From positions 5,022,001 to 5,086,000 of the forward strand of contig CATNEN010000024.1 of assembly GCA_950097015.1 (NCBI GenBank): 64,000 bases of DNA, written 5' to 3'. The stretch's first letter is position 1. Every line of letters begins with the position of its first letter. Source of the stretch: Macrostomum hystrix. Lineage: Eukaryota; Animalia; Platyhelminthes. Positions 32,152 to 58,059 of this stretch are shown one piece after another. Below the pieces are notes generated by a model. That model worked only from the letters and a program-made list of their open reading frames with translations, had not been told where the DNA came from and did not search any database. The position numbers and the translations under genes were made by a program.

Positions 32152-35100
32152 ATGCCGCTATTCCAGTACCACCTTCTAGCACTGCCACTGCTGCTTGCCC
32201 TGGACCTGTTGGTAGCTGGGGCCTGCGGCGCCCACGTCCAACACGGCAACGAAACTCGACACTTTGGCGACCTGTGAGTGACGGGCTGTCTGGTAAAATA
32301 TGTTTTGCGATAGATTTTTAGACAACGCTGCACACTTCCCACACTCCACTCAACCACTTCTCTCTCACTCCCCTCTCTCTCATCCACACTCCCCTCTCTC
32401 ATCCACACTCCCCTCTCTCATCCCCACTCCCCTCTCTCATCCACACTCCCCTCTCTCATCCGCACTCCCCTCTCTCATCCACACTCCCCTCTCTCATCCG
32501 CACTCCCCTCTCTCTCATCCACACTCCCCTCTCTCATCCGCACTCCCCTCTCTCTCATCCACACTCCCCTCTCTTATCCGCACTCCCCTCTCTCTCATCC
32601 ACACTCCCCTCTCTTATCCGCACTCCCCTCTCTCATCCCCACTCCCCTCTCTCATCCACACTCCCCTCTCTCATCCGCACTCCCCTCTCTCATCCACACT
32701 CCCCTCTCTCATCCGCACTCCCCTCTCTCTCATCCACACTCCCCTCTCTCATCCGCACTCCCCTCTCTCTCATCCACACTCCCCTCTCTTATCCGCACTC
32801 CCCTCTCTCTCATCCACACTCCCCTCTCTCTCATCCACACTCCCCTCTCTCATCCACACTCCCCTCTCTCATATCCACACTCCCCTCTCTCATCCACACT
32901 CCCCTCTCTCATCCACACTCCCCTCTCTCATCCACACTCCCCTCTCTCATCCACACTCCCCTCTCTCATCCACACTCCCCTCTCTCATCCACACTCCCCT
33001 CTCTCTCATCCACACTCCCCTCTCTCATCCACACTCCCCTCTCTCTCATCTACACTCCCCTCTCTCATCCACACTCCGCTCTCTCTCATCTACACTCCCC
33101 TCTCTCATCCACACTCCCCTCTCTCATCCGCACTCCCCTCTCTCATCCACACTCCCCTCTCTCATCCACACTCCCCTCTCTCATCCGCACTCCCCTCTCT
33201 CATCCACACTCCCCTCTCTCATCCACACTCCCCTCTCTCATCCACACTCCCCTCTCCCATCCACACTCCCCTCTCTCATCCACACTCCCCTCTCTCATCC
33301 ACACTCCCCTCTCTCATCCACACTCCCCTCTCTCATCCACACTCCCCTCTCTCATCCGCACTCCCCTCTCTCATCCGCACTCCCCTCTCTCTCATCCACA
33401 CTCCCCTCTCTCATCCACACTCCCCTCTCTCATCCGCACTCCCCTCTCTCATCCACACTCCCCTCTCTCATCCACACTCCCCTCTCCCATCCACACTCCC
33501 CTCTCTCATCCACACTCCCCTCTCTCATCCACACTCCCCTCTCTCATCCACACTCCCCTCTCTCATCCACACTCCCCTCTCTCATCCACACTCCCCTCTC
33601 TCATCCACACTCCCCTCTCTCATCCACACTCCCCTCTCTCATCCACACTCCCCTCTCTCATCCACACTCCCCTCTCATTTAAACGCCCCTCTCTCATCCA
33701 CACTCCCCTCTCTCATCCACACTCCCCTCTCATTTAAACGCCCCTCTCTCACACCACTCTCTCATTCACACTAATTTATCAAATTGTACGCAAAAATAGA
33801 ACTTACTGTGTTTCAACAATCTATGATCCAATTCCTGATCACATGACCGATAGGCACTACATGATTCTGGCACCCCAGACCGGCCGTCTGGGCTCTCCCA
33901 TCATCATCAGCTGCGCTTTGCTCACTGGCGAGACGATCAGCGCAGCTAGAGCTCGTCTCTTCCAGCTGAATACTGCTGGGCAGCACGCCAACATCAGCGC
34001 CGAGAACTTCTGGACTCGCGGCAGCGGTGATGTCTTTGGTTGAGTCTAGAAAACTGAAATCAGAAGCACCTGTGGGTCACGAGCCCCTGTTTGTGAAGAA
34101 CCCCTGTGTGTGAAGAGCCCCTTTGTGTGAAGAGCCCCTGTGTGTGAAGAGCCCCTGTGTGTGAAGAGCCCCTGTGTGTGAAGAGCCCGTGTGTGTGAAG
34201 AGCCCCTGTGTGTGAAGAGCCCCTGTATGTGAAGAGCCCGTGTGTGTGAAGAGCCCTGTGTGTGAAGAGCCCCTTTGCGTGAAGAGCCCCTGTATGTGAA
34301 GAGCCCCTGTGTGTGAAGAGCCCCTGTGTGTGAAGAGCCCCTGTGTGTGAAGAGCCCCTGTGTGTGAAGAGCCCCTGTGTGTGAAGAGCCCGTGTGTGTG
34401 AAGAGCCCCTGTGTGTGAAGAGCCCCTGTGTGTGAAGAGCCCGTGTGTGTGAAGAGCCCCTGTGTGTGAAGAGCCCCTGTGTGTGAAGAGCCCCTGTGTG
34501 TGAAGAGCCCCTGTGTGTTAAGAGCCCCTGTGTGTCTAGAGCACCTGTGGGTCCCGGGTACATGTGGGTCAAAAGCATTTAGTATAAATAAGTTCCTTTT
34601 CGCCTCCTCCAACAATCGATTGCAGATTTCCTGACTTTGTCTCTGGTCCTGGAAAATAAAGTGAGTGTGAAAGCTGCATATGGGTTTTAGTAGTTCTAGG
34701 CTAGCATTTTAAAGTAATATATATATTTTAAATCCTGAGGTCAATACCAAATTACTTTCTTTCTTTCAGGGCTCCATCGATCTGCAGGGCAATTATCGGC
34801 TGAGTGTGGAGCTGACGGCCTCAGGCGGGACAGTCTACCGCAACACAACCACCATCCAAATTCTACAGCCCCGGCTCCTGACCTTCGTGCAGACGGACAA
34901 GGCCCTGTACCAGCCAGGCCAGACTGTCAAGTTCCGCGTGCTCTGCCTCAACGACTCGCTGCGGCCCGTGGCAACCAACCTCACCGTGCTGATCAAGGTG
35001 AGTGACCAGCTGTGTGTTCCATTGGACTGGGGTGACCAACCTCACCGAGTCTGGTCACCTGGTCATCTGGTCATCTGACCAGCTTTCCCGAGTCTGTTGA

Positions 35101-56100: not shown

Positions 56101-58059
56101 CAGGTCGACGGTGAACTTCGGAAGGGTGTAGCGCTCGACAGAGAAGCTCTTGGACTCGCGCTGGCCGCGGCTGCCGCTCACCTCGATGCGCCAGGAGCCG
56201 AGGAGGGGCGGGTCGGCCAGCTCGAACTGGCCCCGCATCACCGCCTGGGAGGCGTTGAGCAGCTCCGACGGCACCTCGTGGAGGAACCGGTCCACCAGGT
56301 TTCCCTGGGCATCCTGCGGGCATCGAAGAGTCGAGGACGCGTCAGGAACCGTCAAGGACCATCAGGAATGCGGCTTCAACAGTCTCGGGAAAGCTGGTCA
56401 GATGACCAGGTGACCAGACTCAATGAGGTCCAATGGAACACACAGCTGGTCACTCACCTTGATCAGCACGGTGAGGTTGGTCACCCCAGTCCAATGGAAC
56501 ACACAGCTGGTCACTCACCTTGATCAGCACGGTGAGGTTGGTCACCCCAGTCCAATGGAACACACAGCTGGTCACTCACCTTGATCAGCACGGTGAGGTT
56601 GGTCACCCCAGTCCAATGGAACACACAGCTGGTCACTCACCTTGATCAGCACGGTGAGGTTGGTCACCCCAGTCCAATGGAACACACAGCTGGTCACTCA
56701 CCTTGATCAGCACGGTGAGGTTGGTTGCCACGGGCCGCAGCGAGTCGTTGAGGCAGAGCACGCGGAACTTGACAGTCTGGCCTGGCTGGTACAGGGCCTT
56801 GTCCGTCTGCACGAAGGTCAGGAGCCGGGGCTTCTGAACTCGGACGAACGCGGTGCTGCGGTAGACTGTCCCGCCCGAGGCTGTGAGCTCCACACTGAGA
56901 TTGTAGCTACCAGGCTTATTGGTTTCCACCTGTTCAATGCAAATTTTTATTAAAAGAAAAGCTTACTTGGAGAAACAGGCGGGGAACACAGAATCTGAGG
57001 AATATTTCCTTGCATTTACTTTTTCCACGTGGTTTTTTTAAACATAAAAACGCACGCGCACGTAAAACTCTAATTTAGATGCGTGAACTCACGTCAGCTT
57101 TCAGTGTTGGCGAAAGAGTCAGAAAGTCTGGAATTGAAACATTGAAAACGACTGCGTGAGCTTAAAGATATGAACAAAATGCAATAAAATGCACACCTTC
57201 TTTGACTAGACATTGACTAATTCGACACAAATTTTAATGAGATTTGGGCAGTGTGATGAGACACAAACGTGATGAGACACACAACCGTGTTGAGTCACAC
57301 ACAGCGTGATGAGACACACACAGCGTGATGAGACACAGCGTGATGAGACACACAGCGTGATGAGACACACACAGCGTGATGAGACACACACAGCGTGATG
57401 AGACACAGCGTGATGAGACACACAATCATGATGAGACACACAGACTTGATGTGACACACAAACGTGATGCGAGACAGAAACGTGATGAGGCACACAGCGT
57501 GATGTCAACACCAAGAGCCATTCACCAACTCCGCCACCGCTGCCGCTTGTCCAGGAGTCCTCGGCGCCAAAAGTTCGATCGTCATTTGCCATGTTCAGGG
57601 GTGACAAACTGGCTCTAGCGGAGCTGATCGTCTCGCCAGTGAGAAGGGCGCAGCTGACGGTGACGGGAGAGCCCAGACGGCCGGTCTGTGGCACCAGGAT
57701 CATGTACCGCCTGTCCAGGACAATTTATAGTTCATATCGAATTTTTTGCACTCTTATTTATGCTTTGTTATTTATATCGCCTTTCTTCGAATTTTCCATG
57801 GTAAATTTAAATTTAACCTTTTTATTTAAACTTACAGTTTTGAATTTTAAACAAAAAATCAGCACTTAATTGCATTGCACATTCAAATAAATAAACAAAA
57901 AAATATATGAATATAAATATTTATCAAATTATAAATTAATTAATAAGCCACTTACAGGTTGCCAAGACGCTGATGAGTCCGGCTCACTGGTTCTGGAGCA
58001 GCATCGACCCATCTACAGCAAATGAGTGACAGCAATGCTATAAGTTGCAGAAACAGCAT
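47170..58059 (-). CDS. TEP: Thioester-containing protein B (CD109/A2M/iTEP family), secreted, 17 exons, about 1516 aa
   Basis: Exons 58059-57956, 57710-57526, 57127-57093, 56929-56702, 56313-55782, 55651-55539, 55176-54973, 54702-54589, 54117-53929, 51548-51291, 51206-51164, 50856-50658, 50590-50174, 50066-49013, 48910-48227, 48158-48056, 47258-47170. Total 4551 nt in frame. Signal peptide [20 protein letters not shown]; GCGEQ thioester; intron positions and phases identical to TEP-A. Confidence 0.92.
47283..48035. repeat. 19-bp minisatellite (about 40 copies), last intron of TEP-B
   Basis: Reverse complement of the 43600-45140 unit. Confidence 0.97.
51628..53915. repeat. 27-bp minisatellite (about 85 copies), TEP-B intron 9
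   Basis: (GGATGCAGTGAGCACATGAGAAGCAGC)n; stop-free in several frames. Confidence 0.97.
54172..54387. repeat. 18-bp minisatellite (about 12 copies), TEP-B intron 8
   Basis: (ACTGGAGTGACAGGCATG)n. Confidence 0.95.
55200..55465. repeat. Degenerate 8/16-bp repeat (GTAGGATTGCAGGATG)n, TEP-B intron 6
   Basis: Imperfect direct repeats. Confidence 0.8.
56430..56722 (-). repeat. 61-bp tandem repeat duplicating the exon 4 / intron 4 junction of TEP-B (five AAG|GTGAGT donors)
   Basis: cactcacctt recurs at 56451, 56512, 56573, 56634 and 56695. Confidence 0.95.
57250..57500. repeat. 15-19 bp repeat (TGATGAGACACACAGCG)n, TEP-B intron 2
   Basis: Imperfect direct repeats. Confidence 0.85.

Follow-up and report, generated by a model that had tools for sequence, protein, structure and literature searches.

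Near-identical tracts in an old inverted pair of thioester-protein genes of Macrostomum hystrix: probable recurrent gene conversion

Two converging genes for thioester-containing proteins

In a 64,000-nt window of the Macrostomum hystrix genome (assembly GCA_950097015.1, contig CATNEN010000024.1, positions 5,022,001 to 5,086,000 of the forward strand), two genes from the TEP/A2M family (TEP, thioester-containing protein) lie tail to tail. The copies are nearly identical in three tracts and strongly diverged between them, and we consider recurrent interlocus gene conversion the probable cause. All positions given below are those of the window, and the two genes are as follows.

32152..45273, + strand: left TEP/A2M-family gene; 16 exons (model), 1496 amino acids, signal peptide in exon 1, GCGEQ at 41876-41890
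47170..58059, - strand: right TEP/A2M-family gene; 16 exons (model), 1503 amino acids, GCGEQ at 49745-49759

Both models have complete open frames, a signal peptide and the GCGEQ motif (residue 955 in the left protein, 964 in the right), and the introns of the left model are GT-AG. An earlier reading made from the sequence alone, without database searches, had described two complete converging genes, and the open frames bear this out. It had also counted 17 exons in each gene; our models contain 16, and a 17th exon was sought and not found. The models were built from conservation between the copies, GT-AG sites and, over the 3' two-thirds, the joints of spliced RNA contigs. Exon boundaries were placed by eye and introns 9-15 by RNA joints, as automatic splice-site chaining was unreliable. 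For the right gene, the RNA contigs have six introns removed (48159-48226, 48911-49012, 50067-50173, 50591-50657, 50857-51163 and 51207-51290). No strong phase-compatible donor was found for exon 2, and two intron-poor TEP paralogs that were tried as templates did not provide a full-length reference.

Pfam and database searches were run exon by exon, the joined coding sequence being used only for the frame check and for synonymous (dS) and non-synonymous (dN) divergence. TED_complement was matched in both genes (E=8e-45), and the Pfam domains follow the canonical order: MG2 (exons 3-4), MG3 (exon 4), the end of A2M_BRD (exon 9; a weak match, E=0.015), A2M (exon 12) and TED (exons 13-14). The closest solved chains to the thioester exon (403 amino acids) are human CD109, A2ML1 and A2M. 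In a protein search with this exon, whose length filter leaves out full-length TEPs, no match exceeded 58% identity, a value reached over a short stretch only; one matching fragment came from Macrostomum lignano. Both genes thus encode A2M/CD109-type thioester-containing proteins, and the family is not in doubt. MG1, MG4 and MG5 were not detected by the Pfam scan of the short exons. As for the C-terminal receptor-binding/MG8 domain, exon 14 had no PF07677 match at E<=0.1, and exons 15-16 were too short for the scan.

The 3' halves of the two genes form inverted arms around a spacer, and a minisatellite lies within each arm.

40913..45261, + strand: tract C, left arm; begins in the middle of exon 11 and ends 12 nt short of the stop codon, residues 692-1493 (A2M/MG7, CUB, TED, C-terminus)
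47176..50722, - strand: tract C, right arm; ungapped pairing with the left arm over 2684 bp, one of two genomic copies
45262..47175, unstranded: spacer, holding both stop codons and both 3' untranslated regions
43597..45139, + strand: 81 copies of a 19-bp minisatellite unit, filling the left gene's last intron
47285-48038: right counterpart of the 19-bp minisatellite, 40 copies

An inverted-repeat search of the window paired 40913-44350 with 47285-50722 (3438 nt, 99% complementary). Position p on the left corresponds to 91635-p on the right, and in this ungapped register left 40913-43596 matches right 50722-48039 at 2681 of 2684 bp, with no gaps. The mismatches are two intronic sites, 41507 (A/G) and 41516 (T/C), and a synonymous one at 41851 (C/A, ATC/ATA). 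Upstream of 40913 identity is lost at once. At the inner end, the last exon is identical up to left 45261 and right 47176, 12 nt and 6 nt before the respective stop codons, after which the left gene ends in CPGCPIP* and the right in CPGCS*. The sequence-only reading had anticipated most of this: an absence of indels over about 2.7 kb, about three substitutions at the very sites found here, and a loss of identity a few codons before each stop. Both ends of the arms that it proposed (40913-45261 and 47176-50722) were likewise confirmed, but the gap-free pairing halts at the 19-bp array, whose copy number differs between the sides. The arms are accordingly unequal in length (3.5-4.3 kb). Beside the last acceptor they differ by three substitutions and a 4-nt indel. 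When the 19-bp arrays were compared in register no signal emerged, in-register and out-of-register identities being alike.

A genome search found the arm in two copies only in the 220-Mb, 42-contig assembly, with no third copy. For the spacer, a genome search returned no second copy, save for a 19-bp array. AATAAA-like signals lie within the spacer about 180-190 nt past each stop codon, and the spacer also carries two small tandem repeats. A putative open reading frame of 129 amino acids lies mid-spacer (46092-46481, - strand); its start is hydrophobic and signal-like, and it had no Pfam match. Inverted arms of more than 99.9% identity thus abut a unique 1.9-kb spacer, as in a palindrome. The simplest reading of the inner end of arm identity is that it marks the edge of the original duplication.

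Young tracts in an old background

Codon alignment and ungapped comparison of the two copies delimited three near-identical tracts. Tract C is the arm described above; tracts A and B lie in the 5' halves of the genes.

34867..35473, + strand: tract A, left; intron 3 with the adjoining 131 nt of exon 3 and 319 nt of exon 4, residues 133-283 (MG2-MG3)
55995..56832, - strand: tract A, right; intron 3 enlarged by a 61-bp unit repeated 4.9 times
38975..39874, + strand: tract B, left; exon 8 and intron 8, preceded by the end of intron 7 and followed by the first 181 nt of exon 9, residues 499-622
51368..54346, - strand: tract B, right; same content as on the left, split by a 27-bp minisatellite (51623-53921)

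Together the tracts hold 1075 of the 1485 aligned codons (72%), with a dS of 0.004 and a dN of 0.001. In the remaining 410 codons dS is 1.20, dN 0.41 and amino-acid identity 51%; coding identity outside the tracts is about 65%. Calculated exon by exon, a check that the sequence-only reading had proposed, dS is 0-0.004 in exons 12-15 of tract C versus 0.6-1.7 in the diverged blocks, where synonymous sites are saturated. These values agree with the claim made in that reading that the duplication is old and its arms young, and also with its estimate of about 50-55% protein identity for the other exon pairs; the pair that it quoted (left 38546-38659) is 55% identical in protein.

Outside its repeats, tract A differs at 3 of 512 nt, near its 3' edge, and contains perfect runs at 34867-35047 and 35143-35418. 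In tract B, four substitutions fall in about 557 nt outside the array; exon 8 shows 100% identity, and the tract ends abruptly at 39875. Tract C has 3 differences in 2684 nt before the array. The edges at 34867, 35473, 39875 and 40913 fall inside exons, and one further edge lies in intron 7. The four small introns within tract C (344 nt) show two differences in all, while introns of the diverged parts are unalignable and carry unrelated minisatellites. Identical tracts are also found away from the centre of the locus, where the copies lie 16-21 kb apart, and 3.5 kb and 1 kb of sequence with a dS of about 1 separate the tracts from one another.

Chance was ruled out as the source of arm identity, since coding sequence outside the tracts is only about 65% identical. 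Purifying selection was ruled out by the identical introns and silent sites. Because introns and silent sites have been homogenised together with the rest, the identity reflects copying.

Three blocks have stayed distinct. One comprises the signal peptide and MG1 (residues 1-132); a second runs from the end of MG3 into MG4 and MG5 (residues 284-498); the third lies between tracts B and C (residues 623-691). The last of these, to judge by its place in the domain order, is the bait region, and it differs between the genes as follows.

39875..40912, + strand: left bait-region cassette; exon 10 with the adjoining parts of exons 9 and 11 and two introns, 209 coding nt
50723..51367, - strand: right bait-region cassette; 254 coding nt, exceeding the left by 15 codons

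In the domain order the cassette sits between the close of the Pfam A2M_BRD match, which it follows directly, and the A2M domain. Exon 11, most of which belongs to the bait block, has as a whole the highest dN of the gene (0.50, with a dS of 1.7). Elsewhere in the genome, the left cassette matches only through its intronic repeat, and the right cassette is unique. The same holds for the diverged blocks in general: beyond intronic repeats they had no match elsewhere in the genome, and no donor locus was found in the assembly. A left diverged exon is 63% identical in amino acids to its right counterpart versus 40% to the next TEP (contig C32). Together with the lack of donor matches, this points to the two genes being long-standing sister paralogs whose diverged blocks were probably not imported from elsewhere.

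Probable conversion between inverted paralogs and its alternatives

We favour, with fairly high confidence, an explanation by interlocus gene conversion that has recurred between two old inverted paralogs and has left the bait region, MG1 and MG3-MG5 different. Several features expected of interlocus conversion are found: near-identical tracts are set in older divergence, introns are included and the tract edges are independent of exon structure. An old inverted tail-to-tail duplication would have given rise to two A2M/CD109-type thioester proteins. Repeated non-reciprocal exchange between the inverted copies would then have overwritten three stretches, exons and introns alike, namely MG2-MG3, a stretch reaching up to the end of the bait domain, and A2M/MG7 through the thioester domain to the C-terminus. 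The most recent event would be that of the 3' arms, reaching the inner edge of the duplicated DNA and so giving the locus the look of a palindrome around its 1.9-kb spacer; since conversion is bounded by homology, the youngest tract resembles a palindrome arm. Escape of the three distinct blocks may be due to their divergence and indels, which would prevent heteroduplexes from forming, or to selection against copies that had been converted. We infer the mechanism, its recurrence and the reason for this escape.

That copying was repeated is suggested by a difference between the tracts: A and B together differ at 7 of 1069 nt and C at 3 of 2684 nt (Fisher p=0.008). This apparent age gap, and the position of the tracts kilobases apart across sequence with a dS of about 1, argue for at least two events. 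A one-off event, in which one recent and perhaps patchy repair or replacement carried parts of one gene into the other, with nothing ongoing and nothing maintaining the arms, is in our estimate improbable. All three tracts are indeed very young (0.1-0.7% divergence) and their age difference rests on few sites; however, the 3.5 kb and 1 kb of strongly diverged sequence between them would be hard to obtain from one heteroduplex, and the difference between A+B and C speaks against a single event. A young inverted duplication of the whole gene appears very improbable; the distinct blocks would then be of later origin, either imported from other TEP loci or produced by very rapid diversifying evolution. 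Bait regions evolve fast, and the bait region does have the highest dN of the gene (exon 11), but the synonymous saturation of the diverged blocks, their unalignable introns with different minisatellites and the lack of a donor locus in the assembly contradict this history.

An assembly artefact, either a fold-back or consensus bleeding between truly different 3' halves, seems to us the least credible account. Near-identical paralogs of TEP clusters have been mis-assembled before, a caveat raised for Anopheles (PMC2576239), and at both exonic differences (49784 and 51540) all contigs show the left-type base. The arms differ, however, in array copy number and in their flanks, and they sit within a 10-kb structure that single HiFi reads can span. 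Read evidence was collected over right 48045-51600 (the arm plus 880 bp of flank) from four runs, three of them consisting of spliced RNA contigs. The reads were available as Logan contigs, in which variants are collapsed and each contig has a single depth figure, so that a depth figure cannot be taken as a count of copies. DNA run X1 contains a contig that is continuous over 48045-51397 and crosses 50722. For DNA contigs, the depth reaches 184.5 over the arm and 162 over tract B versus 89.6 in the left-only flank, or about 2:1; read depth had been proposed as a check in the sequence-only reading, and the result supports two copies. RNA contigs of runs X2 and X5, from different studies, follow the left gene from the arm through 209 other letters and rejoin at 51368, matching the left model exactly. 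Run X2 also contains the right-gene path, which passes from the arm through 50723-50856 and 51164-51206 to 51291 onward. The X2 arm contig stops at the branch point, 50722, and its depth of 159 is roughly additive, close to the sum of the left (99.5) and right (45.5) branches. Both genes are transcribed and two copies of the arm are present in the DNA; a fold-back or falsely duplicated arm is unlikely.

Conversion may have been recent relative to variation within the species. Against the reference arm, an RNA contig of run X5, a sample in which the right gene is not detectably expressed and variants are collapsed, shows 5 differences in about 2 kb; the two reference arms differ from each other at 1 exonic site. 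Because X5 thus differs from the arm more than the arms differ from each other, the last conversion seems younger than allelic coalescence. The X5 variants lie at 48287, 48305, 49042, 49563 and 49704. Four of the five are non-synonymous (D>E, E>K, D>A, Y>C); two protein changes fall within about 65 codons downstream of the thioester, and a run labelled as another organism carries the variant at 49042 as well.

GC content at third codon positions is 0.81 in the tracts versus 0.65-0.67 outside (p about 1e-9 to 1e-11). This fits GC-biased conversion, though it is no proof of it.

Several points weigh against recurrent conversion as set out here. The difference in age between the tracts depends on 10 substitutions, and the higher GC content at third positions could alternatively reflect domain-specific codon use. 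The tracts were compared within one genome and with unphased contigs, a basis on which concerted evolution over time is only a possibility. With collapsed variants, contig-based arguments on copy number and polymorphism are only suggestive. At the two exonic differences the uniform left-type base also counts here; the right-type bases may be rare alleles or errors, and if they are minor alleles the arms are even more alike. Finally, the exon 2 donors are weak (GTCTTT / GTTGGT), and the 5' exon boundaries are model-based.

The sequence-only reading had proposed ongoing arm-to-arm conversion of the kind described for palindromes on mammalian Y chromosomes. The conversion part of this proposal stands, as introns and silent sites were copied and the structure is very probably no assembly artefact; the Y-type analogy is loose, given the short arms and the off-centre tracts. 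Ordinary interlocus conversion between inverted paralogs fits better than a dedicated Y-type palindrome, because the arms measure 3.5-4.3 kb in one gene pair and identical tracts also occur off-centre. Maintenance of the palindrome may plausibly be ongoing.

Related cases are known in other animals. In humans, the tail-to-tail pair RHD/RHCE undergoes frequent conversion, and inverted orientation favours conversion and hybrid alleles; it belongs to a different family, and its spacer is much larger and contains a gene. The nearest parallel within the family comes from Anopheles gambiae, where gene conversion occurs among the neighbouring loci TEP1, TEP5 and TEP6 (Obbard et al. 2008, PMC2576239). 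As at that locus, close paralogs here are chimeras of differently aged tracts, and the thioester-domain region is involved. Conversion there creates divergent TEP1 alleles, whereas in M. hystrix, of an animal lineage outside the insects, it homogenises inverted paralogs over 72% of the coding sequence and spares the bait. Primate sex-chromosome palindromes undergo arm-to-arm conversion with GC bias (PMC3723533, PMC8981503, PMC3403216). The locus resembles these in its inverted arms, which enclose a unique spacer and are more than 99.9% identical, and in a composition that fits GC-biased conversion; it differs in its arms of a few kilobases (tens of kb to Mb in primates), its presumably recombining setting and its additional off-centre tracts. 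Ectopic conversion in duplicates of Drosophila and Caenorhabditis, such as Hsp70 and amylase (reviewed in PMC3924832 and PMC3966223), produces the same mosaic of homogenised and diverged sequence, silent and non-coding DNA included. In principle the locus does not differ from those duplicates; what makes it special is the part that has been spared. For TEP paralogs and for inverted duplicates alike, conversion has been published, and this locus is a clean example of a known process; a literature search found no publication on TEP conversion in flatworms. The locus offers a well-delimited natural case for studying conversion tract length, GC bias and the divergence barrier in a little-studied animal lineage.

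Bait region, intronic repeats and neighbouring genes

From this locus one can read what two paralogs of an innate-immune opsonin or protease trap have in common and where they stay apart. A shared reactive thioester half, combined with different baits and with differences in some macroglobulin domains, predicts the same chemistry with different triggering proteases or partners. A more novel but improbable idea is that the pair acts as a cassette system, offering several combinations of recognition and bait modules in populations on one constant thioester warhead. The three identical tracts flank the diverged blocks in inverted orientation, and in such a system a crossover within A or B would flip the segment in the middle of the locus. 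The inversion would re-pair the N-terminal MG block of one gene with the bait region of the other and leave both genes intact. Selection would hold the modules different, and conversion would hold the homology arms identical.

Nearly all long introns of both genes are filled by different minisatellites, with units of 15-36 bp and up to 85 copies. These intronic stretches lie at 32375-33731, 34065-34549, 36032-37240, 37922-38378, 40193-40753, 51623-53921 and 57249-57504. Homologous arrays differ 2- to 10-fold in copy number between the two genes; the 27-bp unit of tract B, for example, is present in 85 copies on the right (51623-53921) versus 8 on the left. The 61-bp unit of the right gene (56428-56725, 4.9 copies at 100% identity) spans the exon 3/intron 3 junction, and the left gene has about 1.4 copies. 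The repeat creates five identical donors (ATCAAG followed by GTGAGT), and the reading frame would be kept only with use of the first. An element of about 85 nt within intron 6 of the right gene (54767-54851) is present in at least 40 copies of 90-99% identity on many contigs and looks like a short dispersed repeat, similar to a miniature inverted-repeat transposable element or a short interspersed nuclear element.

Other matches to the thioester domain in the genome lie on contig C3 at about 10.96-11.28 Mb and at C32:2.04 Mb, C38:16.23 Mb and C8:4.25 Mb. Intron-poor TEP genes form a cluster on contig C3, and C32 carries the closest outgroup paralog. The neighbouring open reading frames in the window encode a cyclin with N and C domains (1611-3083), a beta-TrCP-like F-box/WD40 protein (21652-23901) and a galactosyltransferase (27774-29282); a protein word search with the cyclin frame gave a single match, of 34% identity. 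A Tc1/mariner-like helix-turn-helix reading frame (59308-59979) lies just outside the right gene.

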